Source: Andalucia godoyi And28 (Eukaryota; Protista; Jakobida). From it: a stretch of 64,000 nt of DNA. The notes beneath the pieces are model-generated. The model saw nothing but the letters and a program-made list of their open reading frames with translations. It did not search any database and was not told where the DNA came from. The stretch covers positions 274,857 to 338,856 of the forward strand of contig VRVR01000022.1 in assembly GCA_009859145.1 (NCBI GenBank), in the 5' to 3' direction. Shown piece by piece: positions 1 to 31,373 of this stretch. The position numbers and the translations under genes are program-made. Numbering within the stretch: position 1 is the first letter of the stretch; each line of letters begins with the position of its first letter.

Positions 1-571
1 TGTTTGTGACCTTTATGCGCATGAGCACATGATTATGGTCTGCCTTTGCGTACTCGACTTGCACGTCCCAGTAGGCCCGTTGATCCATGATTTTCGTGTC
101 GACAAGCTCGAATTCGCAGTCCTGGAGTCCGCGAGTGAGATTCTCTTGCACCAGCTGGGTGTATGGAAACTCGCTTTGCGGATACTTGTACAGCGCCTTC
201 GCATACGAATACGTTGGCGTCGCATCCAAATAGTAGTACAGCTCCTTCACATCTTCTCCATGAACCCCTTCTGGACCCGATACCATGAAAAACCGCTCCT
301 TCAAGATCGGATCGACACCGTTCCACAACACAGGAGCCAGGCAAATCCGACACTCGCGATCCGTGAATCCAAAGATTCCGTCCTCTCCCCATCGATATGC
401 CCTTGACCGAGCATGGTCATGCGGGAAGTAATTCCAAGAATCTCCGTTTGCAGAGTAGTCCTCACGAACCGTGCCCCATTGCCGCCCGCTAATATACGGA
501 CCAAACCGCTTCCAGTTGCAACGCCTCAGACCGTCCTCCTCCAGCCTCTGAATCTCTGCATGGTGCTTCAT
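1..571 (-). CDS. GH63/MGH1-like glycoside hydrolase (YMR196W-like glucosidase), 5' part; runs off the window start
   Basis: Not in the ORF track; translated by hand from ATG at 571: [65 protein letters not shown]...[13 protein letters not shown]...[22 protein letters not shown]. These are the hallmark N-terminal motifs of this family. Open to the window edge. Confidence 0.85.
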
Positions 572-817
572 GTCTTTATTTTCCTCCCCCTCCTGCTTCT
601 TATTCCTTTTTTTAATAAAATGTTTCTTTCTCTTCTTCTCTGCCAGCCTCGATTCTTGGTAAATGCAAAAGGGGGTTTCATACCAGAGTGCGGAACTGTT
701 CAAGCTGAGATTCAAAAATAGGAAAGGACCAAATTAAAATGAAAAAAAACACGACGGGCAATACGCTCCGACAACTTCCACTTTCGAGAAGCTCTGTTCG
801 GGAGCTTTTTTCGCCGG

Positions 818-2776: not shown

Positions 2777-2845
2777 GAAATAACACACAAAATAGATATA
2801 CTTTCGCGAGGTCATCTTGCGGGTGGAAGCTTCTGAAGCGAAATC

Positions 2846-5800
2846 TCAGTCGTTGGTCCATTGGTTCGTACGAATTGGCGAGGCAATTCCACGGAGATCA
2901 ACGGATGAAGGGTCTTTGCCCTCTTCTCGGAGGAGTTCTTGGTATAACCTTACACTCTGCTCCAGCGCAGACAGCATTGCGAAGTTCGATTTGCCAAAAA
3001 GCACAGCTCTCTGAAGAACTTCCATGACTTTGAAATAGACATTGCCCAAGCGGACGACCGTTCCGGATGCCGTTTGTGCAGGATCAAACGGACCCACGGT
3101 CAAGGTTGTGCTTTTGATGAAGATTCTTTCCGAGATGCAAAGAGTGTCGAAGCGTGGAAGATGGCGGGATTCTTGTTCGTGCATCACGGCAAGAGCGCTC
3201 TCAATGTTTGGAACGAACACAACATGTCGGAGCAGTCGCTCCACGACTGCCATGTCTCGTCGGCTGTGCAAGGGTTCAAGAATATGGGTAGCCCTTCGAC
3301 ATCCATGCCGGCGCACGTACTCAGGCAGCGGGAATTCCTTGTCCGGATGCCCAGACCCAGAAATATGAACAACTGGTAAACGACAAGACAAGCACCTCTT
3401 ATATTCGTCATCCGTTCGAGCTAAATAGCGTCCCAGCACATCCGAGAACTGCCAGCAAAGTAGGGACCCGAGTTCCGCAATCGACTCGATTGTTTCATCA
3501 AGCTCGCTTTTTGGGGCACGAAGAACGACAATATCCACCAGTTGATCTATTCCAATGCAGTTCTTATGTTTTGGCCCAAGCCGAGTAAATGGTTGCATCT
3601 TCGAGCGTAAACTTGCTCGTAACCGTTGCAGCTTGTCCATCGCAGAACCCAGGTCGGCGCTGGACGAAATGGAGAATTGCTCAGCCGTAATCGATCCCGT
3701 AATATCATTCAGAACGCGCTGGAGGACGGCGAAGCGGTACCGAAGATTGTAATCCGATCTCCGGAATAACTCACATGCATCAACCGATGTGCTCTCCAAT
3801 GACGTGCGCACGTAATCTGCGAACACCTGTACCAAGTCCACTTCCACAGTCCACATGTGTGGAGCAAAAAACCGCCGACGCTGCTCCATATATGAGACCT
3901 TGAAAACGCGGGGCATGTCGCACAGCAAACTGTCAGAGTGGAAAATGAAGACTGGACGGTCATCCTTGACTTCTTGCAAGCGATAGGCGATAACATCACA
4001 AATCACGTCCACAGATTGCTGAACAATATGCCGATCTGCGAAATCGAGATACCCTCCTTCAATGATGAGAGAAACCTCCAGAGTCGGCGCACAGCTTCCT
4101 TGGTCAGCACCAACTAGAAAACGTGCCTCAAGACGTCGAACAAAGCCCACACCATCTGCCATGCATCTCTCCAACAGTAGTTCCGTTGGTGCACCACCAC
4201 CCAAACTTCGAAGTTTTCTTCCAGTGCGGCTTTCCGCACCTCTGCCGTTCTCCAGCACGCAGAGAGAGAACTGAAGGGCAGCTTCCTGTTGATCGGGATC
4301 AAAAACAATGGTAACATCATCGACAGCGCATTCCCCATCAACAAATTTCGACGAAACCGTAATCCTGTCAAAGGGAAATATCTTGCAATGGACACCTAGT
4401 ACAGCAACTCTCATATCATTCGCTACACCAGACGTGACAGAATTCCCACCGACATCGAATAGCCGGAGCTTCAAACAACGAAACGCAAACATCGCTTGCA
4501 CAGGGAGTCGGCGCATTTGGGGATGATCTTCCAGTTTCCAACCGTCGATTTCGTAGAGGCGAACCGTACTAGGAGATCCAGGTACTACATTCACATACAA
4601 CGCATCCGTTGTCAACGAAAATTCATCGAAACTCAACCGGAACACAATTCCCACGCAACCAACATGGGCCACAAACGAAGGACATGAAAGCACTATGCAG
4701 TAGCCACCAATCTGAAGGATTGGATTTTCTGGTAAAAAATAGTGGTCGCTCTGGATGTGGCCCGCTGATTGCACTGCAAAATGGGAAAACTGAGAACGCA
4801 CGTCCGTGAACGGTGTTCCCACATCACTGTCCACCATCTGTATTTTGGAGGGTGCATCCGGTGAGAACGGTAATGCATTTCCAAAGCGGTCCGTCATTCG
4901 AACGTACATTTCTGGGAGCCCTGTCCCACTGGCCACTTCGGGAATCTGAGCGCTGGCAGCGTCGACGTCTTTCCAGGAAACAAGCAACCGTGACGGCAGC
5001 TCGGCTCTGAGATGAAAACTCAGATCAATCCCAAATACGGGTATCAATGCATTTTTGAACCGGAGCGAAATGACGTACGACCCGTAGTTTGTGAGCGTAG
5101 GGAAAACGGAATCCACAAGATACGACGACAATGAATAATAATCGACTAGTAGCTCACCACCGTTGATTGCGTGCTCACAAACTACGATTCCATTGCACAG
5201 TGCTTCCACACGCGGACTATCAGAATCGTGAAACATAGCGAAATCCCCATCGGCAGCGAGCAAACGAAACCGTATGTCCGGTATCCTGGACCCAACAGGC
5301 ACAATCCCAGTGAACTGCATGCTAGGAAAGGAATCCGATGTGACATCCGAATCTGCCTTCAGAATATGGAACGGGTCCTCGATGGCGGCAGTGCAGGGGT
5401 ATCGCGAAGCTTCCACTAGGACAGTAAGAGAACACGCTGCTACTTCTGCTGTTGCTGCTGTTGCTTCTCTGTCATTTTGTCGGCATTCAATCTCAAGCAG
5501 AAATTCGCCGTTAACGGGAGGCACAAGAGTGCGATATTCTGGCAAACAGATATGCACGACTGAGGAAACGGGAAAGGGAACTGCGGCTTTGATCGTAGGG
5601 AAGCAGAGAACAGCGCTACAGGGAAATGGTACTGGGCTTCCGAATCGATCGAATGCTGCCACCGTAAATGGAGGAACAGACGTTCCGGACCGAATTCGAG
5701 GCATTTGGTTTGCCGATGTTCCTGAGAATTGCGCCCGAATCGAGCAAAAAGTACCTGCACAGACGCTGCACGACAACTCCGTCGAGCCCAGGAGTTCGAG

Positions 5801-8800
5801 GCTTTCATTAAAGCCCGCAAGCAAACCACTGTCCTTTTCCGCGGGTCCGAAGAGGTCAATCTCGAGAAAACAGGATTCCGATTCCCCAAAAAAGGAAAAG
5901 TGATCACGTTCGTCTCGGAAGAGAATGCACAAGCCGTGCATCACATACTGAGATTCATGCGATTCATAAACAAAGGATACTGGAGGCATTGTCAAATAAA
6001 ACCGGGGTGATTTGATGCGAAGTCGAACAGCCTCGTCGGTGAGAACCGGATCTAGTGAGATGGCATTATTCATATCATCGTAGATCTTAAGGCAGAGTGT
6101 AAATGGAACATCTACAGACAACTGAGGTTGCGGAACACTGGCCATTATCCGACGAACAACGCTGTTGGTGACATGGACGGCCAACTCAAGATCCCCACAG
6201 ATGCTTTCCTCCAGATCAGAAAGCAGGAATGACGATTGTTCGAGAACGTTACGCTGCAATCTGCTCTTAAACACAAGAACATAATCGGCGCAGCCGTTAA
6301 ATTCCAAGACATGGGATGCATCTGCTACACACTGAAAAGGATACTCTTTGATGATATGTCCTCGAACAAACTTGCCGACCTCGGAGTTCCATGAAGATTC
6401 GTACACTTGTAATGCTACCATGAAGGGAGGGTCGTCCAGAGGCGAGCAAAAGTCGGGCAACCGCAATAGCGATCTCGGAGACGAGCATATCCTCTCTCCA
6501 AACTCCCGCGAGCAGCAAAATCGCGTGGTAAAATGGTACGTGCCTTCCGACAGAGTGCACGCGCCCGACGTGCAAGAGTTCGATGAGACACGACGAGTTT
6601 CCTTGGTCATGATTCCGGCCTGAAGAACGCTGGAGAGGACCAATCGGTGATCTGGAATGTGCATTCGAAAAAACGAAAACCGAGCCTCTGCCTTCGCTCT
6701 GTCAAAACGCCTTCCGTTCAGCAATAACTGAGAAACAGCAACGCGGTAGATGCCAGCATCATGGAACAAGTCCGCAGGAAGCAAGCGGATATTTGCAATC
6801 GCATCAGCGGCCTCAATCGTTTCTGCTTGCGATGCCGACCAGTTGTCCACAGTGAAGGACACGCATTGAATGGGAAATACACCGTTCTCGTCCACATAGA
6901 AAATCTGATTTGAAGCTGATCCGGAAGGATCATCACCGACACAATCCACCGATCGAAGAGGAGCTAAATTAAATGCACTTCCACGAAGCACGCAGCGACT
7001 CCATGACCCGCTGGGACTCAAAGGGCTACCACTATGAAACCTCGAAAGTTCAGCAAATCCATCTTCGCGAGCATGACATTCTCCCGCCCACTCGTAAACC
7101 GCCGGTTCCCATGGAGCTACTGCGATTCCCGCGATATCAAACACTGTCAGCAGATTGTCAAATCTGGAGGAAAACTTGTCTATGCAGAGCGGGAACTCGC
7201 CATGGAAGAACAGCTGGCCACGGATACGCTTCAGTGCTGGAGCTGGAGCCAATGCACTGTCGCTTCTGAAGTGCGATGGCAACAGGTACTGATATGGGAG
7301 CAGTTTGCCGTTCCAATACACTTCGCACACATATCCACGATGTGGGCAGGAGTCCCAGTCAGCCAAACACGTTCTCTCGTCATTTACAGCGTCTTCCACG
7401 CAATCTAGATCCAGGCGCTCCGACGGATCCGGAGGCAGTGACTCCTCGTTGAAAAACACCGGAAAGTACTTGAGAATAATTTTTGCACAACGACAAAGGT
7501 CAAGTACGAGTGGTGCGCACGACGACGCAGACATGAGACCTCGATCATATGCATTTGGATGGCTATTGCAGAGCTGGCGAATAATGGTGTTTCCTTGCAC
7601 ATCGGCACCTCGTACCGATATGTTGAGTGGAGGAATCGCTCTGCAAGGTCTTGGAACGGCCGGTTTCAAAGCGTTGGAGCGTGGAAAGCCACGATCATTC
7701 AAGTAATAATAGAAGGCGTGGGCCAGTGAGGTGGAATACGAGTCAACAAGTGAAATGATGCATTGGTTTAGGAGCTCAGCAGGGTCGAACAAGTGCGTGG
7801 AGTCCCTCTGAAGAACTCTGCTGAATGGCATCAGCATCTCCATGCGAAGTTTCGAAATAACAATGAGGGTGTACGAGGAGCATCTCCGATGCATGTCCAG
7901 CCACTGAGCCGATAGACCCGTAGAATGCTCTTCTTCTGAAAAACAAGACGGATCTTCTGGAATGATCTCGTTCAGCGAATTCTCGAATGCTCGAAACGAG
8001 TCTGTCGGAAAGGCCATCAGCTTTTCTGCATCTATTTCCACCGAGTATGTAGGATACCCTTCCTTCCTTGTGATAACTCGAAGCAATCGCCCAAGGGAAA
8101 ACGCAGCACGCTTCGCTCCCACTCCAAACACGCCCAGCCTTCCGTTTGCAAAAAACGGAAAGTCTTGTGGATCCCGAGTCTGTGCCTCTCCACGATGAGT
8201 CGGGATCAGTTCCTTTGGCACTGAAAATGCAAAGCACTCAATCAACTCGCGGTCTGTCATTCCGCATCCGTCGTCAGAAATCATGATAAACCCAACATCC
8301 CGCTTCTCTTGAAATTTGAGAGGACCCGGGACCGGATGAAACGAAACTTCGATATTCTCAGCGTTTGCTTCGATCGCGTTGTCAATAAATGCGGACAAAT
8401 AGGAATGGGTCGGGTGCTTCCACGCGTTCATCTTTGGGATTGGGCGTACGTCAAAAGGATGGACAAACAGGATGGGATTCAGTCTGTAGCTTGAAAACCC
8501 AAACGTAAACTCTCGACACTCTTGTCCGACGTGCCGTACAATGATGACGACGTTCACATGATTGCGAAACCACAAGAAATTCGCATCTGTGACGGTCATG
8601 TATTCAAATACAGCATTTTGCACTGATTCTCCATCCTTTCTTTCGTCGTGACGGTCGCGATCCATACCTGGATCACTGCCTGTGCGTGCGTCTTCGTCCT
8701 CGTCGTCATCAACCGAGCAGCCAAATCGGCTTTTGTGAAGCCTTGCTACGCACTCTACATGATCAGCATTCGCTGGATTTCCTCCATCCTTTTCATATGC

Positions 8801-8902
8801 AGACAACGCACACTCCAGCAGATGTGTCAAACTGCGCATAAACAAAAGATTCCCAAACAACCGGTCCACAGGCGCCAGAATGCTCACAGCAATCGGTCGC
8901 AT
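2846..8902 (-). CDS. SMCHD1: SMCHD1/GMI1-like protein: GHKL ATPase, long beta-rich linker, C-terminal SMC hinge-like region
   Basis: About 2018-aa uninterrupted ORF (first ATG 8902; start uncertain). GHKL motifs FIDNAIEA, DDGCGMT and LGVFGVGAKRAAFSLG. SMCHD1-typical VYWNGKLLPY and KRIRGQLF. C-terminal IAELGSLLCWQFSDVLGRYLARTDD resembles the SMCHD1 hinge. Confidence 0.8.
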   Translation of the reverse strand: MRPIAVSILAPVDRLFGNLLFMRSLTHLLECALSAYEKDGGNPANADHVECVARLHKSRFGCSVDDDEDEDARTGSDPGMDRDRHDERKDGESVQNAVFEYMTVTDANFLWFRNHVNVVIIVRHVGQECREFTFGFSSYRLNPILFVHPFDVRPIPKMNAWKHPTHSYLSAFIDNAIEANAENIEVSFHPVPGPLKFQEKRDVGFIMISDDGCGMTDRELIECFAFSVPKELIPTHRGEAQTRDPQDFPFFANGRLGVFGVGAKRAAFSLGRLLRVITRKEGYPTYSVEIDAEKLMAFPTDSFRAFENSLNEIIPEDPSCFSEEEHSTGLSAQWLDMHRRCSSYTLIVISKLRMEMLMPFSRVLQRDSTHLFDPAELLNQCIISLVDSYSTSLAHAFYYYLNDRGFPRSNALKPAVPRPCRAIPPLNISVRGADVQGNTIIRQLCNSHPNAYDRGLMSASSCAPLVLDLCRCAKIILKYFPVFFNEESLPPDPSERLDLDCVEDAVNDERTCLADWDSCPHRGYVCEVYWNGKLLPYQYLLPSHFRSDSALAPAPALKRIRGQLFFHGEFPLCIDKFSSRFDNLLTVFDIAGIAVAPWEPAVYEWAGECHAREDGFAELSRFHSGSPLSPSGSWSRCVLRGSAFNLAPLRSVDCVGDDPSGSASNQIFYVDENGVFPIQCVSFTVDNWSASQAETIEAADAIANIRLLPADLFHDAGIYRVAVSQLLLNGRRFDRAKAEARFSFFRMHIPDHRLVLSSVLQAGIMTKETRRVSSNSCTSGACTLSEGTYHFTTRFCCSREFGERICSSPRSLLRLPDFCSPLDDPPFMVALQVYESSWNSEVGKFVRGHIIKEYPFQCVADASHVLEFNGCADYVLVFKSRLQRNVLEQSSFLLSDLEESICGDLELAVHVTNSVVRRIMASVPQPQLSVDVPFTLCLKIYDDMNNAISLDPVLTDEAVRLRIKSPRFYLTMPPVSFVYESHESQYVMHGLCILFRDERDHFSFFGESESCFLEIDLFGPAEKDSGLLAGFNESLELLGSTELSCSVCAGTFCSIRAQFSGTSANQMPRIRSGTSVPPFTVAAFDRFGSPVPFPCSAVLCFPTIKAAVPFPVSSVVHICLPEYRTLVPPVNGEFLLEIECRQNDREATAATAEVAACSLTVLVEASRYPCTAAIEDPFHILKADSDVTSDSFPSMQFTGIVPVGSRIPDIRFRLLAADGDFAMFHDSDSPRVEALCNGIVVCEHAINGGELLVDYYSLSSYLVDSVFPTLTNYGSYVISLRFKNALIPVFGIDLSFHLRAELPSRLLVSWKDVDAASAQIPEVASGTGLPEMYVRMTDRFGNALPFSPDAPSKIQMVDSDVGTPFTDVRSQFSHFAVQSAGHIQSDHYFLPENPILQIGGYCIVLSCPSFVAHVGCVGIVFRLSFDEFSLTTDALYVNVVPGSPSTVRLYEIDGWKLEDHPQMRRLPVQAMFAFRCLKLRLFDVGGNSVTSGVANDMRVAVLGVHCKIFPFDRITVSSKFVDGECAVDDVTIVFDPDQQEAALQFSLCVLENGRGAESRTGRKLRSLGGGAPTELLLERCMADGVGFVRRLEARFLVGADQGSCAPTLEVSLIIEGGYLDFADRHIVQQSVDVICDVIAYRLQEVKDDRPVFIFHSDSLLCDMPRVFKVSYMEQRRRFFAPHMWTVEVDLVQVFADYVRTSLESTSVDACELFRRSDYNLRYRFAVLQRVLNDITGSITAEQFSISSSADLGSAMDKLQRLRASLRSKMQPFTRLGPKHKNCIGIDQLVDIVVLRAPKSELDETIESIAELGSLLCWQFSDVLGRYLARTDDEYKRCLSCRLPVVHISGSGHPDKEFPLPEYVRRHGCRRATHILEPLHSRRDMAVVERLLRHVVFVPNIESALAVMHEQESRHLPRFDTLCISERIFIKSTTLTVGPFDPAQTASGTVVRLGNVYFKVMEVLQRAVLFGKSNFAMLSALEQSVRLYQELLREEGKDPSSVDLRGIASPIRTNQWTND

Positions 8903-9280
8903 GATGAACAATCGCACCAAGTCTCACCTCGTCGCCGCCGTCCCAACAACAACAGCATGAAAGTTCAGCGCATTCGGCGCAATACCCTGGAGCAACAACG
9001 GCCAAAAGAATGCGGGAGAAACAGGAAGTGAATAATTGCTATAGTCATGCATAATAATAATAAATAAATAAAATAAAGGAAACCCAAAAACAAAACAAAA
9101 CAACAAAAAACGCGGCGAACCGTAGTCGGTTCCGTTGAACCTCAAACGTGTTTCTGGACTTTCGCTCAGAAGCCGCCGAAAGCTGTGCTGGTGTTCCTTC
9201 CGTCCTCTTTTTGTTCTACTTCTGCATATGCGACATTCGCTTTCGCTCACAGGGATAGGGACACGGATACTCGCACAATC

Positions 9281-9972: not shown

Positions 9973-10722
9973 TTACGCAGTTTTTCTCATTGGTGGGGAT
10001 GCAAAGCGTCTTCTGACGTCCCTGAGTTCCGCATCCGTGGCTGGACCAAACGATCCAGAGGATTCCCGAACCCAAATAGCGCGGTCTGTCTGCGTGGCCG
10101 TTGGCGAAACATCGACGAATCGGTAGCGAACACGCGGAGTCATGTCATTCTTGCAGAGTGCCGTTGCAAACTGGTCCTCATACGGCACGAGCGGCTTCCC
10201 GCGGATCGCAGCCAGCTGATCCTCGACAGCAGTCGCAGCCGACTCGGGCGCCGCAAGATCCTCGTCGCCGACAATGTACATGCGACCCGGAGTCTTCAGT
10301 CCAGCAACCTCCTTCTCCATCCTCTCCTTGTCGTCCGAGACAGCACCAGCACCACCCTTCTTGGCTGTGCGCTCCTGGTACTTTGCGACAAACCGGACAT
10401 TCGTGATTGACTCTGCAACATCAAGCGGCGTCTCCACAGGAGAAAACGGCGATTTTGCAATTGCGAGAATTCCTTGGATACGGGCTACAGAGCATCCAAA
10501 CTTTTGAGAAAGTGCAGTCAGTGAGTTCACGGCCGGGTTTGATGCGTGAAGCTGGACAATCTCAGCTCGAGCTGCCGGAGAAAGCATGACAATTGTCTCG
10601 GCATTATTCACAGACGATGCCGAGGCCGATGCCGACGATGATGACGATGACTTGGACGACTTGTCTGCAGATGACGACGACGGGCGCGTCGCGGCAAAAC
10701 GAACCAATAGCCGACGAAACAT
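9973..10722 (-). CDS. Mitoribosomal protein mS45 (Bot1/MRPS35-like)
   Basis: Presequence-like MFRRLLVRFAATRP. Bot1-type helix-turn-helix LSPAARAEIVQLH...LSQKFGCSVARIQGIL. C-terminal RFVDVS...IWVRESSGSFGPAT motif. Confidence 0.7.
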   Translation of the reverse strand: MFRRLLVRFAATRPSSSSADKSSKSSSSSSASASASSVNNAETIVMLSPAARAEIVQLHASNPAVNSLTALSQKFGCSVARIQGILAIAKSPFSPVETPLDVAESITNVRFVAKYQERTAKKGGAGAVSDDKERMEKEVAGLKTPGRMYIVGDEDLAAPESAATAVEDQLAAIRGKPLVPYEDQFATALCKNDMTPRVRYRFVDVSPTATQTDRAIWVRESSGSFGPATDAELRDVRRRFASPPMRKTA

Positions 10723-10963
10723 GGCTCCTCGGGGATGAAACTCAGCTTCTTCTTTTAATGTCTAATACTTTAATTAAAAAAAAAATGAATTTAAAAATGA
10801 ATTTAAAAAGAAATTTCTAAAAATTAAAAATTAAAAAAAAGAAAAAGTAATAATGGCGTCTCCAATCCATCTTGGAAACAGAAAAAGGGCGATAAAGTAC
10901 GTAAGGTGATCATGCGCATGTCAGCCTTTCTGTGGGATACGCATTTTTACGTTACTTAATTGC

Positions 10964-13900
10964 TCATGGTACGCGACCGGACTCGATCATTTCTGCATAT
11001 TCGCGAGATTGCAAAAAGAGAGGGAACATGGACTGCTCCATGTCGCGTCGGACCTCTTCCACAGCCGAATCAAAAAGATTACGAGGAGGATTGCTGGACG
11101 ACGCTTGGTACAATGATAAGATGTGTCGCCGGGTGGCTTCGTTGATGTTGATCGTATCGAACGAGTCGAGGGAGATGAATCTTTCAATGATCACACGAGA
11201 CTTCAGCGCAGACCGGGGTACAGCGCTCTCTTGCTGGAACTCGCGGACAGAATTGTAAAAGTTCAAACCATCCGGATCAAAATTGTTCTCCACAAAAGAC
11301 TGGAAATACTGACACATGTGGCGATCATTCAAAATCATTAGCAACGCCGATGCAGAGGACTTCGCATTGGCGGACGATGACGAGCGAGCATTCGACGCCG
11401 ATGACGAATGGTGATGATTAGCGTGCTGCAGCTGTTTCAACGGCACTACCGCTTCCTCTTCGTCGTCATCCAGCACAATCTCAATCTCATTCTTGTTCGC
11501 TTCCTGCGACGACCGACTCTGCGACGTCGGGGCAGCACGCTGAGGCGCTGCGGCCTCAACAGAGGCTTCCTCTTCATCATCATCCGGATTGAATTTGTAC
11601 GCCGGAGGAGCAACTACAGAAGAGGTCAAAGATGGGGTTGGCTGTTGTGGCGACGGCGGATGCTGAGTTGACACGGGCAGGTCGCGCTTCTCCAGGTTGA
11701 GACGTAGCAGCTTCTCTGAAATCTCCCTTTGGAAGGGAGAAGCCGAAGAGGAACTGTTGGATGCGCTAGGAGACCCAGGAGACAGTGGCTGGTTCGCGTG
11801 AGAGCGAGGACGGGGCATGCGCTCTTGAGATTTCGAGAACGATCGCTCGCGCTTCACGCGCGCAGATACTGCTGCCACGCGCGGTGCCAAAGCCTTTGGA
11901 GACTCTGCGGCGCCGTCGGACAACAAATTCGGGGATACAGGTCGGAGCGAGACTGCCTCCTTGGGAATTGCAGACGACAAATTCGGGTCGTCAAACTCAC
12001 GAGACAGGAATAACACGGCAGCCTGCAGAGCATCCACCGTCGGTTCGAGCATTTCCGAAAACAAGACGGCTCCATCTTCCACAACCGCATCATCAGAATC
12101 GCGAGGAAGAGCAACCTGCAAAAGAAGCAAGGCGCTGGCGCGAACGCGCTCCGCAGACGATGCGTATCGGCTGCACCAGCTCCAGAACTGCTGATCCAAC
12201 CGGGAGAGCAAAGGCCGGAATGCAACAACAAGAGTTGGCCGGTATGCTTCGCCCATCGATTCAAGCAGCGAGCGTGTCCATCTGAACAGCATCTCGAGCT
12301 GCAAGGAGCGCTGGTCAAAGATCGGAGAACGAGCACCGAGGGGCGGCAAAATGACTCCGAGAATTTGTCCGATGTACAGCCACATAGGAGACGAGGCGTC
12401 ATCCCCCAGAAGACTCATAATAGCGGAAGCCAAGCGCTTCGAGAAAGTCTGCGATGACAAGCGACTGGCTGGATCCTGCGAAGCAAATGCCCGCAGAGCC
12501 TTGATTGCTGAGAACCAGCCATCAACGATGTCTGGCGACAGCCCATCAATCGTCCCTTGATGCTGCTCCATGGCAAATGCAACATCCAGGCATACGCCCT
12601 CAACATCTTTTCTATTCCCAAGAGACAGTCGAAGAATTGATGGCGTCAGGGCAATCAACGTTGTAACATACTGGAAGACCGTGGGATGAATGGATGCACA
12701 GGAAGACGGGACCACCTGGACATACCGAGGAGAAAATGCTTGCGCAAAGGTTACGAGTAGCCGGAGTGCCAGAGGCTCGCATTCATTTCCGACATCCGCC
12801 AATGCCGGAAGAAGAAGCGGCTGGATTCCATCAAACAAGGACGTTGCTGCGCTTGACGATCCCAGAGAACATACGGGCACTTTCCAGTCCGCGACCAAGT
12901 CGATTCCATTCGGTCGATTCATGTTGAAGAATGTTTCGAAACAGATAGAATCCTGTGCAATCGTGTCGAGCAGGGGAATTGCGCTGCGATACAAGAGCTG
13001 AGAAGCAGTGACCTGCGACGGCTGCTGGGAACGCTTGACGACGGAATGCACAAAAGAACGCATTAGAGCAATCGAGGAGGAGAGCATTGCAGGGCTTTCA
13101 TGCAACACGTTACGCTTGGAAAGGTCCTGTGCTGCCGCGGTAAGAACGCGCGCACACTCAATGGCTCTTAGGAGGGAGGGAGCAAAGGCAGACTCACTCG
13201 TACCCAGCGCAAGAATCTTCCAGAGCAGCCTGCGCTTCGTGGTGGAGCGAGGTTTCGCACGCTCCGCTTTTCGCAAGGACCGCTCTGCCGCTTGAATCGC
13301 CCGAAGCAGGTGCGTCTGCACCAAGAACAGCACTCGGGAATTCATCGGTCTCAAGACCGAACGAAAGACTGCCAGCGCCTTCAAACAGATGCGATGATGC
13401 GCATGCACGGCATGATCTGGAAGAACGACACGCGATGAGGATGGGAAAGCAAACTGCAGGGACTCATGCCCCAGCAGCTCCACAAAGTACGGAGACACTG
13501 ACTGGGAACTTCCAGACATCGTCTGGACCAGCACTCTGACAAACTCGTCTACAAACACCACGGGGCCCTTGGACGGATCCACTTCGCTACTCGACCATGC
13601 GAACCGGACGTTCGGCTGCTGCAGCAGGAAAGCATACGATCGTAAAGCCGTTGCACGACTTGCTTCTGACCCTTGAAATTCCGACGCTTGCGCCATCATT
13701 ACATTGCTGAGGAACATCCGAACCTGGCTGGCATCAATATGTCGGTCGTCCGCGTGGATAAGCGCAAACAAGATGCACACATGAAGACGTTTCTGCAAGG
13801 CCGCAAAGTGATTCGTATCGCAAGCGAGATCCACAAGAGTCTGGAGGACAACCGCACAGCGACATCTCCAGTGCTGAAGAGCCTGATCAACAGAATCAAT

Positions 13901-16900
13901 ATGTCTGCGGCGTGCCGCTGCCACAAAGTTCTTCACGAACTCCGCACGATTCGGCTTTTCAGAGACAACAACGGCAGCCTGCGATGCAGATGATGATGAA
14001 GCTTCTGCTTCAGCACCAGCAGCACTGTTTGTCTCGGCTTTTTCATCCTTGATGACTGCAGCCTGAGCAGCATTTTCAACATCCGCCACAGAGCTCAGAG
14101 ACGCTGCCGCTGCTTCAGTCTGCGCCTCGGACTCTGCTGCATGAGCAACCAACTCTGGAGCACTGCAGACCTCGGACGGCTTTTCAGTTTCGAATTGCTC
14201 CTTGTACGCAGCAGCAGCCTGTTCACGAGCAATGACCTTGCTGAAGTCTCCAATGCATTCGCGGTAGCGCTCCGCGCTGAGTTCATAAACAAGTGGCAGC
14301 ACAACTGCGTCCGCATGCTGGTGATACAAGAACGCAAGAATCTCCGCAGCAAGTGCTTTTCCACTCTTCTGCATTGCATCATTATCGTTCGCAAACTCCA
14401 AACCTGCGGAGACATCGACGAGAATGGACACAACACGAGGAAGATTGACCTGCTCCTCATCCTCCGCCAGAGGGGCTTCAGCAAACGACTGCCACATCTT
14501 TCGCACTTCGCTGGCGGCTCCATTGACCGAAAAGAAAGTTGTGCTCACCGACAACAACGTAGTGACCATGTAGGTCGAGTCCTTCGCGTATGTCGACAAT
14601 CCAATGTTCCCAAGCCACGGGGTGACGATAGGAATCATCCACGCACAGGGTTTGCGGGATTCGATCATTCGCATAAAAGCGTCCTTCACAATGGTCAGCG
14701 ACAACGGCTTCAGCTTCAAGTTCGATGCCAGCAATCGAGACACCAGAGAGGCGTGCTTTCGTACAGACTCGATATGTCCAGAGGAGAACACCAGACGGAA
14801 ATACTGGAGATCGTCCAGCAGGGTAGCAGCACGGAAGATCTTCACGACAATGCACAACGATTCGTAAGCAGCCAGGTGAATCTCTCGCGCCTCATGATTC
14901 AAGAACCACAAGAGCAAGACAATCACCGAAGACAACACATCATCGGATAAATGAATACGACTCTCAAGGGCACCAATGTCAATTTCTGGGAAAGCGACGT
15001 ATGTGTTTTGTGTGAACGCAAGAATGAGGTCGTGCACTTGACGATGCTCGTCTAGACCACTCAGCGGGGCCGGAGGTGCATTTCCAAGCGTGGACTCAAA
15101 GCCAGAGGCATCAAACTTTGCGGGAACAAATACTCGGGACAGAGCTCGAAGCAAGGCACACCGATGAGCTTCTTCCTCAGCAGTTGAATCCTTGTCCAAA
15201 GAGTCGTACATGACCTTGAGCAACTGGTGCAGCAAGATGGCAGAGTTGTTATTCAGAATCAAGGCGTCAATCACATGATACCTCAAATATTCCAAATCGA
15301 TCCACTGATCCAGCTTTTCGTTGCTCTCCTCTAAAATACGACCAAAATGCGGGACAATAGAAAGAGCAATATGCGCCTCCTTCACAATAGCAGACGCCAG
15401 CACGTCCATAGTAGACAACGTCGATTGTTTGACAGCAGCGTCCTTTTCTTTGGACTGTACGAGCGTCGCCGCCTGCGAGCACCGCGGATCAAAAGGAGAA
15501 GCCTGTCGAATCCGGCCGATCGGCAACAGCATCTGCACAAGAAGACGTCGAAGCTCCACAGTGGACTCGGGAAGCACAGACAAAACCTGCTCCAACGACA
15601 CAATCAAATCAAAAGCTGACACCAATTCGACTACCGCAGTAGCAGCATACTTGGACACCGGGCCACGGTGAAACGACGAAATGCGACCGACGTCCTCAAA
15701 GGTGATTGCTGTTAATCTCTGCCAACTCTGAAGAATCATTCGCAGGGCGGCGTCGGCGTTGGACGGCAAAACGTTGAACGCCACATCGCGCATGACCGGG
15801 AGAGAGAGCAACACGAGGCGATCGCCGTTCTTCTTGCGCATCTTGGACAGCGATTGAACTGAAGACTGCGGTACAGACTTGATCACAGGAGTCGATGATC
15901 CTCCACGCTCCTCGCGAATACCAAACAGGCGCTGCAAAACAGACAGCGACAGCGACGAATGAGTAGATGCCAATGCAAACGAAGCGGCGTAACGCACCCA
16001 AGTGACATCAGCAGTAAGCAGCGGTAGCACTGTTTCCACCAGGGAATCAAAGAACGCAGATTCCGGAACAGAATCTGCTCCAGCCCGTTCGGCTGTGGTC
16101 TTCGATCCAGGGGCTTCCTCGACTTGGTCTGAGAACGAGACATGCTTGCGTGAGTCTGACGAGGAAAGAGGGGTGCCCGGCGCTGCCGCTTCCGGTTCCG
16201 TCTTCTCTTGGACGGGAGTCGATCGCTGAACAGAGGTCGAAGAGAATAAAAAGCAAAGCCCCCAAAAGAACATCAAGGCGTAATGAGACCCAAAAATACC
16301 TTTTGCCTTATTCTGCTTTTCCGATTTCTGCAATTGCTCTTCGCTCAAAGGCACTTCTGGTAGCAACGCAAGGCGTTTCAAGACTCGATCACGAGCCAAT
16401 CTGGCGATATCGACCTTGACATCACACAACAGTTCACGAAGAACGTACCCATATAGCAAAGTGTTGTCAGTATCCAATGCAGCAAACAGCGGAGCTGGCT
16501 CTGATTCCATTTGGTCCTGCAGAACCTTGAAGTACGGGTCGGCGACTGCATTCACACGATACGCATTTTGAAGCTCCGGCGTAGAATGCACGACAATCGG
16601 ACGGTCAACGACGATTCTATTGTTTGCATCATCGATCAGACACTTGTTGAACGCACGAAGAACAAGTTCCTTCTGCCACTCCGATTCTAGTTTCACGGGC
16701 AGCCGCTGGCGGACCTGAGAACTGGCCATGGCTGCTACTTGCTCCAGAACACGAAGGGCGAGACGTCGTACGACACCAGAGTGATGTGCGAGGAACGGCA
16801 AGCAAGACCCGTAAATCTTGTCAACCAAAGCATCAGAAGGCCCATTTGTTGATGAATAGTCCGATGAGCGATGCCAGAGGTTCAGAAAACACAGAACGTT

Positions 16901-19324
16901 GTCCAGCAAGGTAGAGACGCAGGATTCGGAAGCATATGCGTCGTTCTGAAGCAGAAGCACCGTTTGTTCCACAATAGTCGAACGCTGCTGTGACGAATTT
17001 TTCGCAACAAGAGATTGGAGAGCGTGGGACGTTGCAATCGCAAAAAGCGTCTCAAAATGAACCAAAAACCGTCCGAGAAATTCTCCCCTCTCGAACAGCA
17101 TCGAGTCTGGAGTGTGGACAGCGGAAAGGCAGCGAACTGCTTCCACATAAATTCGCAGATACCGCAGCTTGTCTTTGGTAATGCTGCCACGCAAAACATT
17201 GGCTTGTACTTGTTTTGCGCGGTCAGAACGAGAAAGGGTTTGTTCTGGCACGCGAGCGTCGTACTGATAGATATCTTTGACGAACTTCTGCTGTGCCTTG
17301 AAATACGAAGATCGGTCTTCGAGGCTGTCCGTCGTAGAAATCGGCATTCGTTTCTTCCCTTCCGAGCCGAATGCCACGTTCTCCCATACCGATACGACAT
17401 TTTCCAAGGACGCATGGTCAGAAACTGCCCTGGAGTTCTTCACATGAAACTCAATCTTCAAATCCTCATCTTCCTCCGCACTGGCTGCAGAAGACGGAAT
17501 GCTTTCCGATGATTCTTCTTTTTCCGAGCGCTCGGCAAACATACGAAGCGCCTCGGTTTCAAAGGAATCCGATTGATAGTAGGTTACGGGCACGTACTCG
17601 GGAACAACAGACACTCCCGAGTTCCATCCACCAATCTCACGATCGCACAGCGGCAACAAAAACACCACGGCCGTTGAAAGCAGCCCTTTCAAACTTTCAG
17701 TGGCCTCGACGCTGAAGCTCATCAAATGGTCCACAACACGGTTGTCTAGAACTGCTCGAAGAGCACGAATTCCAACTGCATATGCCTCGTGAGACTCCTT
17801 CGGCTTGTCCTTCGCAAGAAGCGTGTGAAACACTGTCTTGCCCAAGGGCAAGCTCTGCAGCGTGATCGTGACCAAAATGTCCACGTACAATCCGTGATGC
17901 AGAAGTGAATCAAACAATGATTTCTTGCCAACAAACAGAAGGTCAATAAACGTCGTCAATCGACTATCCAAGGAGTTCAAGTCATCATCATATCGACTGC
18001 GAAGACCAGCAAAAGAAGGAAAGCCCGAGTCGACTGCATCGTCATCACCCTCAGTGGATTCTCCATCCGACTCGACGTCTTCTGCGCCCAACTGCACACT
18101 TCCCGCGGGAGCTGCACCGGAAGCTGCAGGCTTCTGGAACATAGAGTTACGTCGACCCTTGACGAACGAATTTCGAGGAGCAACAACGTTTGGTGAAGGC
18201 AACGAGGAGCCGTCGTCTGCAGAGGCGGCGGCTGAGGACGAATACACGACACTCTCCAGCGAATTCTTATCAAGAGTCACAGACAATGCCAAATACGATG
18301 GCAATTTATCATTGGACACGTGCCTGCCCCGCAAAAACGTAAGAATGCCTTCCAAGACAGCCGCCATTTGCTTCTTTGAACCATAGTACGAAGATACGGA
18401 TTTTTTGAACAAAAGGAAGAGGCGCTCAAATTCTGTGCGCGGAGCATGCGCCAAGCAAACAGCCATGATTTGCAGACCCATTTCCAGAGTGTCGTCTGAC
18501 TTGATCCATTTTGCGGCAAGAGTGGAGATCATGTTGAGGAGCACGTCATCCAGAAACACGCCCGGCTGCAAGCCGTTCACTGCTGAGAACATTGCGAATG
18601 CAAAAGGATGTCTGGTTTTCTTCGAAACGTCGATGCAGACAAGGCAGTTCCGGATGAAGGATGTCAGAGAAGAAGAGTCCTGTGCAGACATTATACGCAA
18701 ATCTACTCGGGAAATGATTTTGCAAGCCTTCAGCAGATCCACATCTCCAATTTGTTTGATGCTTCCTGGCTGGAACATTGCAGCCCACTTATCCAGAACG
18801 GCTGCAGAGGACCATCTCGACAAACCTTCCAGAAGCAAAACAAGAGATTCAGAATGCGTCGAATACATGCTGAATCCGAGATCAAGAATGCTTCGAACGA
18901 GCGAGGCAGGAATGTCAGCTGCAGGCGCTGCATGAGCGATAACAGCCAGTGTGTCAACTGCAACCCGCGACAAATACGATTTCACAATCATGGCATCATG
19001 CTGACCTTTTGAATCATAGTGTGGACATGACAGCAATGCAGCAGACACGAGAGGGCTTGAGACATCTGCAAACGTCAAATATGTTGCCGCAAATGTCGCC
19101 GGAGAGGCCTTTGCAGCGCTGGAGAGAGTTCGAAGATGCGTGAAGTAGCCTTTTGAAGACGGGAACGACTGCCAAAGCTGCGCATCAAAGACCTCTCTCG
19201 TGAGCTTCTTGTTCTTCTTATCTGGAACATATGGAACAGAGAGCAAGGTGTCCATTTCCCGGCTCAGAATAGAAAGCAGTGTCGCCGCCAACGACTGCGC
19301 GGTATGTGTAGCAAGCGTCGGCAT
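10964..19324 (-). CDS. FRY: Furry/Tao3/Mor2 (NDR-kinase scaffold) homolog with a C-terminal RGS domain
   Basis: About 2786-aa ORF (first ATG 19324). HEAT/ARM-like helical protein matching Furry N-terminal motifs (LDSRLTTFIDLLF, AVGIRALRAVLD, FLGRFLVHFE...ATSHALQSLV, LPFLAH...VRRLALRVLEQV). S/P-rich linker, then an RGS fold (ILNDRHMCQYFQSF...LNFYNSVREF...IIERFI...ININEATRRHI...NLFDSAVEEV...MFPLFLQSREY). Confidence 0.8.
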   Translation of the reverse strand: MPTLATHTAQSLAATLLSILSREMDTLLSVPYVPDKKNKKLTREVFDAQLWQSFPSSKGYFTHLRTLSSAAKASPATFAATYLTFADVSSPLVSAALLSCPHYDSKGQHDAMIVKSYLSRVAVDTLAVIAHAAPAADIPASLVRSILDLGFSMYSTHSESLVLLLEGLSRWSSAAVLDKWAAMFQPGSIKQIGDVDLLKACKIISRVDLRIMSAQDSSSLTSFIRNCLVCIDVSKKTRHPFAFAMFSAVNGLQPGVFLDDVLLNMISTLAAKWIKSDDTLEMGLQIMAVCLAHAPRTEFERLFLLFKKSVSSYYGSKKQMAAVLEGILTFLRGRHVSNDKLPSYLALSVTLDKNSLESVVYSSSAAASADDGSSLPSPNVVAPRNSFVKGRRNSMFQKPAASGAAPAGSVQLGAEDVESDGESTEGDDDAVDSGFPSFAGLRSRYDDDLNSLDSRLTTFIDLLFVGKKSLFDSLLHHGLYVDILVTITLQSLPLGKTVFHTLLAKDKPKESHEAYAVGIRALRAVLDNRVVDHLMSFSVEATESLKGLLSTAVVFLLPLCDREIGGWNSGVSVVPEYVPVTYYQSDSFETEALRMFAERSEKEESSESIPSSAASAEEDEDLKIEFHVKNSRAVSDHASLENVVSVWENVAFGSEGKKRMPISTTDSLEDRSSYFKAQQKFVKDIYQYDARVPEQTLSRSDRAKQVQANVLRGSITKDKLRYLRIYVEAVRCLSAVHTPDSMLFERGEFLGRFLVHFETLFAIATSHALQSLVAKNSSQQRSTIVEQTVLLLQNDAYASESCVSTLLDNVLCFLNLWHRSSDYSSTNGPSDALVDKIYGSCLPFLAHHSGVVRRLALRVLEQVAAMASSQVRQRLPVKLESEWQKELVLRAFNKCLIDDANNRIVVDRPIVVHSTPELQNAYRVNAVADPYFKVLQDQMESEPAPLFAALDTDNTLLYGYVLRELLCDVKVDIARLARDRVLKRLALLPEVPLSEEQLQKSEKQNKAKGIFGSHYALMFFWGLCFLFSSTSVQRSTPVQEKTEPEAAAPGTPLSSSDSRKHVSFSDQVEEAPGSKTTAERAGADSVPESAFFDSLVETVLPLLTADVTWVRYAASFALASTHSSLSLSVLQRLFGIREERGGSSTPVIKSVPQSSVQSLSKMRKKNGDRLVLLSLPVMRDVAFNVLPSNADAALRMILQSWQRLTAITFEDVGRISSFHRGPVSKYAATAVVELVSAFDLIVSLEQVLSVLPESTVELRRLLVQMLLPIGRIRQASPFDPRCSQAATLVQSKEKDAAVKQSTLSTMDVLASAIVKEAHIALSIVPHFGRILEESNEKLDQWIDLEYLRYHVIDALILNNNSAILLHQLLKVMYDSLDKDSTAEEEAHRCALLRALSRVFVPAKFDASGFESTLGNAPPAPLSGLDEHRQVHDLILAFTQNTYVAFPEIDIGALESRIHLSDDVLSSVIVLLLWFLNHEAREIHLAAYESLCIVVKIFRAATLLDDLQYFRLVFSSGHIESVRKHASLVSRLLASNLKLKPLSLTIVKDAFMRMIESRKPCAWMIPIVTPWLGNIGLSTYAKDSTYMVTTLLSVSTTFFSVNGAASEVRKMWQSFAEAPLAEDEEQVNLPRVVSILVDVSAGLEFANDNDAMQKSGKALAAEILAFLYHQHADAVVLPLVYELSAERYRECIGDFSKVIAREQAAAAYKEQFETEKPSEVCSAPELVAHAAESEAQTEAAAASLSSVADVENAAQAAVIKDEKAETNSAAGAEAEASSSSASQAAVVVSEKPNRAEFVKNFVAAARRRHIDSVDQALQHWRCRCAVVLQTLVDLACDTNHFAALQKRLHVCILFALIHADDRHIDASQVRMFLSNVMMAQASEFQGSEASRATALRSYAFLLQQPNVRFAWSSSEVDPSKGPVVFVDEFVRVLVQTMSGSSQSVSPYFVELLGHESLQFAFPSSSRVVLPDHAVHAHHRICLKALAVFRSVLRPMNSRVLFLVQTHLLRAIQAAERSLRKAERAKPRSTTKRRLLWKILALGTSESAFAPSLLRAIECARVLTAAAQDLSKRNVLHESPAMLSSSIALMRSFVHSVVKRSQQPSQVTASQLLYRSAIPLLDTIAQDSICFETFFNMNRPNGIDLVADWKVPVCSLGSSSAATSLFDGIQPLLLPALADVGNECEPLALRLLVTFAQAFSPRYVQVVPSSCASIHPTVFQYVTTLIALTPSILRLSLGNRKDVEGVCLDVAFAMEQHQGTIDGLSPDIVDGWFSAIKALRAFASQDPASRLSSQTFSKRLASAIMSLLGDDASSPMWLYIGQILGVILPPLGARSPIFDQRSLQLEMLFRWTRSLLESMGEAYRPTLVVAFRPLLSRLDQQFWSWCSRYASSAERVRASALLLLQVALPRDSDDAVVEDGAVLFSEMLEPTVDALQAAVLFLSREFDDPNLSSAIPKEAVSLRPVSPNLLSDGAAESPKALAPRVAAVSARVKRERSFSKSQERMPRPRSHANQPLSPGSPSASNSSSSASPFQREISEKLLRLNLEKRDLPVSTQHPPSPQQPTPSLTSSVVAPPAYKFNPDDDEEEASVEAAAPQRAAPTSQSRSSQEANKNEIEIVLDDDEEEAVVPLKQLQHANHHHSSSASNARSSSSANAKSSASALLMILNDRHMCQYFQSFVENNFDPDGLNFYNSVREFQQESAVPRSALKSRVIIERFISLDSFDTININEATRRHILSLYQASSSNPPRNLFDSAVEEVRRDMEQSMFPLFLQSREYAEMIESGRVP

Positions 19325-19652
19325 TCTAGATCTTTTCTCTGTGTCGCGCTCTTGACGTCTGACCAAAGACTAACCAACAAAAAAAGACGACGAGAAACTA
19401 GCCCACAGAAAAGAAAGAAAAAAGAGACGAAAAAGAGAAAGGGATGAAAATATTATTACGCAGAGGACGAAACTAACACTTTTAAAAAAAGAGACGAGAA
19501 GAAGTAGGAAGAAGAAGAAACAAATAGAAGATGAAAATGCAAAACAAAATAAAATACGATGAAAAGGAATACACATAAAACGAGAAAACCTTTTTGCCAA
19601 GCGAGAGGAAGACGATGTGGGGCAGCGGGGCCTTTCGTGGGAGCACGGTCGA

Positions 19653-20750
19653 CCGTTGAATAATAGCAACACGTCATTGTCATGCAACACGTTTTGTTTC
19701 ACAGGGAATTCGTGCTTACGCACGCTCGGCCAAAATTCAGCCGGTGACACAGGCTCTGCATTTTCGACACTCTTTAACGCAGCATCCGTGGCCATCTATT
19801 CTATCATTCGTTGGTTTCACTTTTTTGGTTTCACTTTTTTATTCAAATAGGGGCGTGGGTGCGCTGGGATGACGCATTCGCCTGCGCCTACGCCTACGCC
19901 GCTCGATACACGGCCTCCTAGGTCCCGCAGACCTCCTAAGAGACCACGTGTCACTACGCCTACCGCCTCTTCCTCTCGTGTCTCCAGTTGCGTCAATCGC
20001 TGCAACTGAGGACACGAAAGCGCCTGCTGCTAGGGCCGCCAGACTCAAAATGCACCCTTCTCAGGAACAACGTGTCACGCTGAGAAAGTGGCTCACAGAT
20101 TGATCGAGATTGAGGACGGAGCGCGGAACATCTATCTGAAGAGCGCCGTGAGCTGTGTTGGGGCCTATCCCCTTCGCGGCAACGGGATGCAAGGTTGAAT
20201 ATGCATGTCTACTCGTAGATATGCATGTTGAGTGTATAATGTAGGCGTTTTTGTGCATCAACATTGAACATCAAACAATGTCATATCTGCCCCTCTGTTC
20301 GGCCCCGATGTTCCTACCGTAGTCAAGTCTAGCATTTCTTGATTCTTCACTTTTTGCTGTTCTATTCTTGCTGAGCAAGCTGCGGATGATCATCAAATCA
20401 CGACGATGTGATCGCTTTGCGTTCGGAATGCGCTTTCAAGTCAGAGAACAAGAAGGAACAAAGGCAAAAAGCGTCGTCAGGCGCGATGGGCAACACCGCC
20501 GACCACATTCTGTTTCCTCCAACGTTTCAATTTTTGAATGTTGAATCGCTTGGGAAATATGCTGGCTGCAATGCCCGTCTGACGCAGAGCAATCTGCATT
20601 GAGGAGTTGGTGCTCGCCCCAAATATAAATAAATAAATAGATTTAAGAAACCCGTGTGGCTTGGATCTGCGTTTGGTGACAGCAAGCTAGCATCTTGGAT
20701 CGACCTGTCAGTGACAATTGATTCTACATGTCAGCGTAATTAAAAAAATG
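19653..20750 (-). repeat. Copy A of a dispersed degenerate element (probable decayed gene family)
   Basis: Blocks 19653-19812, 19959-20054 and 20195-20248 align with 40318-40810. Block 20315-20624 is 99% identical to 42410-42719. Motifs also occur at 44765-45145. Confidence 0.85.
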
Positions 20751-20935
20751 TAACTTGAGTCGCCAAAAGGAAATAAGCGGGGCAATCGGGACTCCCTCAA
20801 ACTAAAAACACAAAAAGAAAAAAGCAGAAAGGAAACCACAACAGGTTGATGCAAGGATCCCCTATGGCGGGAGGGAAGGAATCATTCACGGGGTTCTCTC
20901 GAGGCCCAGAAACCTCTCGTGCTTTCTTCTCTGCG

Positions 20936-21082
20936 GTATGCTTTCATTGACAATGATGATCTGGGTTGCCCGCTATCGTGTCTCATTTTGCCCTTGTCTT
21001 CTTTCTTCTTTCTTTCTTTTTTTTTCCGCTTCTTCTTCTTCTTCTTCTTCTTCTTCTTCTTCTTCTTCCTATTATTTGCCAG
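20936..21082 (+). other. Putative 5'-UTR intron upstream of the C2/CEP76-like gene
   Basis: GTATGC donor, long (TTC)n/poly-T tract, and TTTGCCAG acceptor 30 nt before the ATG at 21113. Confidence 0.35.
21029..21069 (+). repeat. (CTT)n microsatellite
   Basis: Direct reading. Confidence 0.9.
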
Positions 21083-21112
21083 TGCGATTGAGAGTAACCA
21101 TCAAACATTAGA

Positions 21113-30494: not shown

Positions 30495-31373
30495 TTAATC
30501 TTGCATGGGCTGCGGGGGCACACCAGGGCCCGGGGGCGTCGCTGTGGTTGACGACGACGACGACGATGGAGTGGGTTGTTGTGAGGGTTGTGAGGAGGAT
30601 TGTGTGGACTGTGTGGACGGTTGTGAAGACGGCGGCTGCTGCTGTTGCTGCTGTGCTTGCTTTTCGGCCTGAATTTCCGCAATGACGGCATCGACTTCCT
30701 CATCTGCAAGCGTTCGAACACCCTGCTCAGAGCGTTTCATGACGGCAACCTCAATGTTCTTTGAGCCTGTTTCGACGACCTCCAGGAGTGCTCGGACCGC
30801 GAGCTTGACCGCATCGTCGTACTTGAGTTCCGGCTCCCAGTTCTTCTCGAGAAACTCGCGAACGGTTGCCGACGACCGTCCAATGGCATTCGATCGCCAC
30901 TCGGTCATCACACCTGACGGCTCCGTCATGAACAGTCGCGGAACATTCGTGTGATGCTCAAACCCTGCAATGAGCGTTGATATTCCAAATGGCCGAACTC
31001 CGCCGGACTGTGTGTAGGACTGCTGGACGCGTGCCACAAAGCGCCCTGCAACCTCGACTCCAATGACATCTTCGTAAGTAAGACCATACGACTGCGCTTC
31101 AATGCGTGCCTTGTTGATCAGCACTCGCGCATCGGCAGTCAGTCCAGCGAAAACGATCGCAATGTGATCGTCAATCAGCGCAATCTTGCGCACAGTACGA
31201 GTGTCCTGGAGCTTTGCAGCCGACTTGCGCTCCACGGCAAGAATCACAGAGTCCGTACCACGAACCCCAACTGCAGTCGAGCCCTTCTTCACTGCCTCCT
31301 GCGCATACTGGACTTGGAAAAGCTGGCCGTCCGGAGAAAAGACTGTGATTGCGCTGTCGTATCGAGAACTCAT
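30495..31373 (-). CDS. PSMA7: 20S proteasome alpha-4 subunit (PSMA7/Pre6) with a Q/S/P-rich tail
   Basis: Start at ATG 31373: [31 protein letters not shown]...[22 protein letters not shown]...[18 protein letters not shown]. Confidence 0.95.

Follow-up and report, generated by a model that had tools for sequence, protein, structure and literature searches.

A single gene on the minus strand of a 64,000-nucleotide stretch of the Andalucia godoyi And28 genome (contig VRVR01000022.1, positions 274,857 to 338,856 of the forward strand; hereafter, the window) encodes a Furry-type scaffold that is joined via a low-complexity linker to a C-terminal RGS domain. The encoded protein, judged by its sequence, is a very divergent representative of the giant helical-repeat scaffolds that make up the Furry/Tao3/Mor2/Pag1 family, and its terminal domain is, by overall sequence, a classical RGS domain that lies outside the known homology classes lacking GTPase-activating protein (GAP) activity. 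The same layout recurs in at least two further, uncultured eukaryotes, indicating that it was inherited and maintained and is not an accident of assembly or annotation. We found this conserved arrangement of a known scaffold family and a known signaling domain described nowhere.

The open reading frame (ORF) that encloses the gene runs from 19366 to 10964 on the minus strand and comprises 2,800 codons with zero internal stops; over the same length, stops number 79 and 106 in the two remaining forward frames. Translation from the first ATG (19322-19324) gives a product of 2,786 amino acids, identical to a database protein (source, EukProt) that we will refer to as P0001. GC content at third codon positions (GC3) was even along the ORF (0.49-0.60) and no sign of an intron was seen within it; the gene appears to consist of a single exon. 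The Furry-homologous part and the RGS domain are separated by 291 codons in which serine (45), alanine (37), leucine (29), and proline (28) are prominent, and the final ~200 of these form an S/A/P/E-rich low-complexity linker. There are 0 stops in frame across this region, compared with 4-13 in each of the other five frames, and the chance of 291 stop-free codons, calculated from base composition, is P ~5e-5. A preliminary description, written by a model from the letters of the window and a list of its ORFs, had the Furry-like ORF running without a stop through a linker into an RGS domain that ends the protein. The 2,800 uninterrupted codons bear this out, and only eight residues follow the Pfam RGS match before the stop codon.

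The Furry family consists of conserved proteins of great size about which little is understood. In its animal and fungal members, NDR kinase is bound by the N-terminal Furry domain, and the protein serves as a scaffold for polarized growth. Pfam by itself was insufficient to place the window protein in this family, because MOR2-PAG1_N (PF14222) scored 22.1 bits (E 8.2e-5), under the 27-bit cut-off, and the MOR2-PAG1 mid and C models gave no match. The Pfam scan that had been suggested in the preliminary description thus left its Furry-like label below threshold at the N domain and without a match at the C domain, and confirmation came from profile-profile comparison instead. Using hhalign, a profile of P0001 together with P0003, a homolog from a metagenome, was set against one built from four amoebozoan Furry proteins (two from Balamuthia and one each from Vermistella and Soliformovum). 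The two aligned with a probability of 100% and an E value of 3.6e-55 over 1,870 columns, covering P0001 residues 35-2355, and by this comparison full-length collinear homology to accepted Furry family members is established.

Sequence searches pointed to the same family. The N-terminal 1,186 amino acids were searched with phmmer against 1.84 billion representative proteins, and five non-self matches were returned, from Vermistella antarctica, Balamuthia mandrillaris, Soliformovum irregulare, an SRA-derived (Logan) assembly contig, and a Joint Genome Institute (JGI) metagenome. All five were MOR2-PAG1 proteins by Pfam, above threshold and at equivalent positions. P0001 has no relative above ~26% identity among these representatives. 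An oomycete origin, considered at first for this intron-poor DNA of ~50% GC, was rejected on this ground, since closer relatives would be expected from a group so well sampled. Residues 700-1032 of P0001, which overlap the best-conserved part of the N-terminal domain, aligned to P0003 with an E value of 8e-16, and stretches near them aligned to the Vermistella, Balamuthia, and Soliformovum Furry proteins. Toward the C-terminus, the region equivalent to MOR2-PAG1_C carries the family motif F-x-G-I-Q-P-L-L, conserved in the family alignment, as FDGIQPLLL.

The window protein resembles the Furry/Tao3/Mor2/Pag1/SAX-2 family in being a giant scaffold (2.4-3.5 thousand amino acids), in its collinearity over about 2,300 residues, in keeping the C-domain motif, and in having its best-conserved block in the N-terminal third, as in the description of the family (PMC2868802). 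That N-terminal conserved region binds the NDR kinase Trc in Drosophila Fry, and the size of Fry suggests a scaffold role (PMC2868802). The window protein differs from the family in its divergence (22% identity to the amoebozoan members, with the Pfam N domain below threshold and the C domain undetected) and in its C-terminal RGS domain. No RGS domain was found by Pfam in the four amoebozoan Furry proteins or in a further, unassigned fragment, P0005, whose contig (L003) stops before the C-terminus; the amoebozoan members retrieved are in this respect like the animal and fungal proteins, which the preliminary description gave as lacking this domain. We know of no RGS domain in animal, fungal, or plant members. 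No solved Furry structure was found in the PDB, either with phmmer or with a profile of the amoebozoan Furry proteins.

The RGS domain was identified by Pfam with a score well above the gathering cut-off (PF00615, 59.2 bits versus 23.9; E 6.6e-16; profile positions 4-116 of 117), at residues 2677-2792 of the 2,800-codon translation. In this part the suggested Pfam scan succeeded, and the match covers almost the same span as the RGS fold of roughly 120 amino acids that had been placed at 10964-11345. A phmmer search of the whole protein against all PDB chains returned RGS8 (1.8e-7), RGS18, RGS16, RGS3, RGS5, and RGS4 (3.6e-6), and the sole row that was not an RGS protein was a chance match (E 0.95). 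An AlphaFold2 model of the domain, built from a three-sequence alignment, was all-helical with a confidence score (pLDDT) of only 63. When this low-confidence model was compared with the PDB using Foldseek, the top 30 matches were all RGS domains, with a probability of 1.0 for nearly all and 0.99 for one, although template modeling (TM) scores were only 0.45-0.6 and E values about 0.01. A profile of three RGS domains (those of the window protein, P0003, and L001, a second metagenomic sequence described below) best matched the R4-type proteins RGS5, RGS8, RGS4, and RGS16, at ~60 bits and E ~1e-16. Other RGS-fold domains scored lower against the same profile: axin, 33 bits; EhRGS-RhoGEF, 24; and GRK2, 23.

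A search for the fusion in other organisms, which had also been suggested, recovered the same layout twice. P0003 is a protein of 2,469 amino acids encoded by one continuous ORF on a 321-kb JGI metagenome contig (L002) with 35% GC. Pfam assigned it MOR2-PAG1_C (PF14225, 49.7 bits; cut-off, 25) and an RGS domain (58.1 bits) at residues 2345-2458 of 2469. BLAST aligned it collinearly with P0001 in at least five blocks, from the N-terminus through the RGS domain, with ~24% identity overall. The two RGS domains are 29% identical (E 3e-13), matching the best Furry blocks in conservation; identity is lowest in the linker region, at 18-22%. Since the window has ~50% GC, the fusion spans genomes of very different composition. 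Contig L002 is intron-poor, and at 1-6446 (minus), beside the P0003 gene, it encodes a REJ-domain (polycystin-like) protein of >2,292 amino acids. The second case was the only match of a homolog search made with the RGS domain alone (P0002), on a 5.1-kb ENA metagenome contig, L001. All on a single strand, MOR2-PAG1_C is split into consecutive halves over two neighboring ORFs of this contig (22.5 and 30.2 bits), which are followed by a P/Q-rich ORF and then by an RGS domain that spans two exons (2578-2820 and 2925-3113) and is ~51% identical to that of the window. A ~117-bp GT..AG intron at 2821-2937 of L001 falls exactly at the loop bearing the equivalent of RGS4 Asn128; the window gene has no intron there.

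Four extra residues after helix 6, FY instead of FW, and an ALK/IL-x-x-Y motif are common to the three RGS domains and absent in human R4 proteins. These shared traits point to one ancestral fusion, and the comparison argues for a single origin. No further members were found in two metagenome scans, one with RGS patterns and one with the FxGIQPLL motif. A word-index homolog search with the whole protein and with its C-terminal 600 amino acids recovered no more than the query protein, probably owing to candidate lists dominated by low-complexity words, and a five-sequence alignment was too divergent to provide a search pattern.

The same observations bear on the possibility that the fusion is a gene-model artifact, in which adjacent Furry and small RGS genes share a frame by chance or a hidden intron or terminator lies between them. 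An ATG does occur just ahead of the RGS domain (…SALLMILNDRHM…), and the gene model was read from genomic DNA alone. However, the 291 stop-free in-frame codons lie in a non-conserved region and have the low chance probability given above, the GC3 of the linker equals that of the rest of the gene, P0003 is the same continuous ORF in an unrelated genome of 35% GC, and L001 shows the same order and strand. We regard an artifact as highly improbable.

What the RGS domain does was considered through its contacts with Gα. Three contacts of RGS4 are critical: Asn128 with Gln204 in switch II of Gα, and Asn88 and Asp163, each with Thr182 in switch I (PMC8252600). In human RGS proteins, the corresponding contacts form a conserved backbone of Gα binding (PMC7572916). 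Equivalent positions were assigned from a multiple alignment of the three domains with RGS4, RGS8, RGS16, and RGS5 (Table 1), in which the window motifs FDPDGLNF, TININ, and MEQSMFPLF align to SEENIDF, EVNLD, and MEKDSYRRF of RGS4. Of these critical residues, the window protein retains Asn128 and carries replacements for Asn88 and Asp163. The substitutions that had been read from the sequence at EENIDF and MEKDSYRRF were correct by this alignment. The retention of the Asn of EVN also holds for the window protein, but that residue is not conserved in the orthologs, where it is Ser (L001) or Pro (P0003). The Ser of L001 was read across the intron, at its GT..AG boundaries, as TIS/IEE; we take Ser at this position to be the residue found in GAP-active RGS proteins of the RZ family. 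Core RGS residues are conserved among the three orthologs, and the Gα-contact positions drift between them.

Table 1. Position of the fusion gene, its domains, and the equivalents of RGS4 Gα-contact residues in the window
Feature	Position	Strand	Remarks
Furry-RGS coding sequence	10964..19324	minus	2,786 codons plus TGA stop at 10964-10966; from ORF list and translation
Furry/Tao3/Mor2-homologous region	12260..19222	minus	P0001 residues 35-2355; hhalign
Best-conserved part of N-terminal Furry domain	16901..17995	minus	Partial MOR2-PAG1_N, profile positions 251-541 of 559
MOR2-PAG1_C-equivalent region	12476..13009	minus	Aligns to P0003 residues 1899-2051, inside the PF14225 match of P0003
Codons between Furry-homologous part and RGS domain	11387..12259	minus	291 codons, no in-frame stop
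C-terminal RGS domain	10967..11386	minus	Pfam match 10991-11338; ends the protein
RGS4 Glu87 equivalent			Window, D; L001, D; P0003, E
RGS4 Asn88 equivalent	11267..11269	minus	Gly (G2686 in P0001); L001, G; P0003, S
RGS4 Asn128 equivalent	11147..11149	minus	Asn (N2726 in P0001); L001, S; P0003, P
RGS4 Leu159 equivalent	11042-11044	minus	Window, Asp; L001, A; P0003, K
RGS4 Asp163 equivalent	11030..11032	minus	Ser (S2765 in P0001); L001, E; P0003, E
RGS4 Arg167 equivalent	11018-11020	minus	Window, Leu; L001, S; P0003, S

Because two of the three critical RGS4 contacts are replaced and all contact positions vary among the orthologs, binding or targeting without strong GAP activity would be expected. 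The reading that we tentatively favor, with a confidence that falls a little short of even, is that the RGS domain serves for docking to Gα or for targeting, and that its canonical GAP catalysis is weak or absent. The appended domain would unite the Furry scaffold with a heterotrimeric Gα at the membrane or cortex, and the polarity machinery could in this way respond locally to receptor or G-protein activity. Alternatively, G-protein signaling might be damped wherever the Furry scaffold sits, or the RGS tail might bring RGS activity to sites of polarized growth; by either route, receptor signaling would be coupled to polarity. RGS domains bind Gα, and some are described as having lost GAP activity and become scaffolds (PMC3971589).

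In a stronger form of docking, the Furry-NDR module might be a direct Gα effector: active Gα would bind the RGS fold in a non-canonical and non-catalytic manner and would recruit or activate the NDR scaffold at the stimulated receptor. The preliminary description had likewise put forward a direct link from heterotrimeric G-protein signaling to the NDR polarity pathway, perhaps through an effector-type domain rather than a GAP. The effector idea is consistent with the unconserved contact residues, but the closeness of the domain to R4 GAP domains (~60 bits, versus 23-33 for axin, GRK2, and RGS-RhoGEF domains) speaks against it. We consider the direct-effector mechanism rather doubtful.

The domain might, on the other hand, be a working GAP. 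The Furry scaffold would then deliver it to sites of polarized growth, where Gα would be switched off locally, and the odd contacts would reflect co-evolution with a divergent Gα. The three-domain profile fits R4 GAP domains best (~60 bits) and non-GAP homology domains far worse, the window protein retains Asn128, L001 has the Ser of the RZ family there, and an acidic residue is retained at the Glu87 position in all three domains. Against this, other residues occupy the Asn88 and Asp163 positions of the window protein, which account for two of the three critical contacts (PMC8252600), and P0003 carries Pro where RGS4 has Asn128. Furthermore, Leu159 and Arg167 are swapped for unrelated residues that differ among the orthologs, unlike a constrained catalytic interface, and the human equivalents of these contacts form a conserved Gα-binding backbone (PMC7572916). 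On balance, a working GAP seems unlikely.

We judge it similarly unlikely that the domain has an RGS fold but plays no part in G-protein signaling, like those of axin, sorting nexins, and AKAP10, and instead binds another partner, a membrane, or the Furry scaffold itself in autoregulation. It is much less similar to axin- and GRK-type domains than to classical RGS domains, and neither an alternative partner nor a conserved alternative surface could be identified from the three sequences. Such a role would nevertheless fit the variation of the canonical Gα contacts among the three orthologs, in which the core residues do not vary. The Pfam RGS family also includes homology domains unrelated to G proteins, and RGS domains that turned into scaffolds are noted in the literature (PMC3971589).

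Several points weigh against docking to Gα as the function of the RGS domain. By sequence, the domain is far closer to the active R4 domains (~60 bits) than to axin (33), GRK2 (23), or EhRGS-RhoGEF (24), and the window copy keeps Asn128; taken together, these allow for a genuine GAP activity. Lack of constraint on the canonical Gα surface could even mean that the domain has some partner other than Gα. Confidence in the structural model of the domain is low (pLDDT 63). No Gα, NDR, or MOB genes were found within the window, and no wider hunt was made. The conservation argument draws on three sequences only, two of them from metagenomes, and the fusion gene is known here from its genomic sequence.

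The RGS domain shares with the R4-type proteins RGS4, RGS5, RGS8, and RGS16 its domain length and helix order and, in the window copy, Asn128; in both sequence (~60 bits against the three-domain profile) and structure (searched with the pLDDT 63 model), these proteins were also its closest matches. R4 proteins, however, are small and contain little besides the RGS domain, which here is the tail of a scaffold of 2,786 amino acids. In addition, Asn88, Leu159, Asp163, and Arg167 are replaced and variable between the orthologs, and the four-residue insertion and FY for FW set the three domains apart. A different analogy, and the one that we favor for how the fusion might work, is provided by the RGS-homology couplers (the p115, PDZ, and LARG RhoGEFs, EhRGS-RhoGEF, and GRK2), in which an RGS fold is likewise fused to an output module that Gα could recruit or regulate. 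Sequence similarity to these is low (23-24 bits for GRK2 and EhRGS-RhoGEF), the output module is a kinase scaffold and not a guanine nucleotide exchange factor or a kinase, and Gα binding is here predicted.

Protist RGS domains have been shuffled independently onto kinase, DEP, LRR, Rho GTPase, START, and ankyrin partners, and unique lineage-specific architectures are the rule, with 229 RGS proteins in Naegleria gruberi (PMC3971589). This widespread shuffling tempers surprise at the fusion, which may be an elaboration particular to its lineage, without relevance for animals or fungi. A Furry or MOR2-PAG1 partner is absent from the combinations named in the main text of that paper (PMC3971589), and a literature search found no paper combining Furry or MOR2-PAG1 with an RGS domain.

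In yeast, the NDR (RAM/MOR) pathway is needed for polarized growth, including the response to the G-protein-coupled mating pheromone signal, but we know of no physical link between this pathway and the G-protein system. To our knowledge, the cues that bring Furry and NDR kinases to the right place at the right time are largely unknown. A natural fusion retained in deeply diverged organisms is a 'Rosetta stone' hint of a functional interaction between the Furry/NDR module and G proteins. If the reading as a Gα effector were true, it would reveal a connection from receptor to polarity that is not known in animals, fungi, or plants. The importance of the fusion would rise if it proved to be a functional link that also held in trans in other eukaryotes. 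The small RGS domain (about 140 amino acids) offers a concrete unit that could be expressed and tested against Gα.

The window as a whole is gene-dense, intron-poor protist DNA with ~50% GC. The neighbors of the fusion gene encode an SMCHD1-like ATPase, a mitochondrial ribosomal protein, CEP76, a kinesin, a proteasome alpha subunit, eL6, and a CDK11-like kinase, and are thus eukaryotic housekeeping and cilium/centrosome genes. Rfam and tRNA scans of the 64-kb window were empty. The only kinase found in the window, at 38060-39259, was considered as an NDR kinase and rejected, since it is CDK11-like.

Upstream of the fusion gene, 19325-21112 is non-coding and common to a head-to-head CEP76-like gene at 21113-25102 (plus), which is transcribed divergently and encodes 1,329 amino acids with three C2 domains, a CEP76 peptidase-like domain, and a CEP76 C-terminal domain. 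A (TCT/GAA)n microsatellite lies at 20997-21068 in this 1.8-kb spacer. Downstream, ~240 bp of AT-rich DNA (10723-10963), with a 12-bp tandem repeat at 10781-10809, separate the stop codon from the next gene on the same strand, which encodes a mitochondrial ribosomal protein L20-like product (9973-10722). Beyond it, a 2,024-amino-acid ORF at 2846-8920 (minus) combines a GHKL ATPase domain (HATPase_c_3) with an SMCHD1 S5-fold domain and encodes an SMCHD1-like chromatin ATPase.

A 770-amino-acid ORF at 57690-60002 (minus), at the same locus as the fusion gene, contains PBP_like_2 (77.5 bits), SBP_bac_1 (30 bits), and a class III adenylate/guanylate cyclase domain (80 bits), and its product looks like a ligand-binding receptor cyclase. 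The closest solved structures of two of the housekeeping proteins would, taken by themselves, give a weak hint at a source outside the opisthokonts, amoebozoans, and discobids. The eL6 protein (54635-55291, minus) is closest to plant eL6, at 217 bits versus about 166 for the next group, and the proteasome alpha subunit (30495-31511, minus) is closest to 7qve, presumably the spinach proteasome, at 320 bits versus 297 for the human structure.

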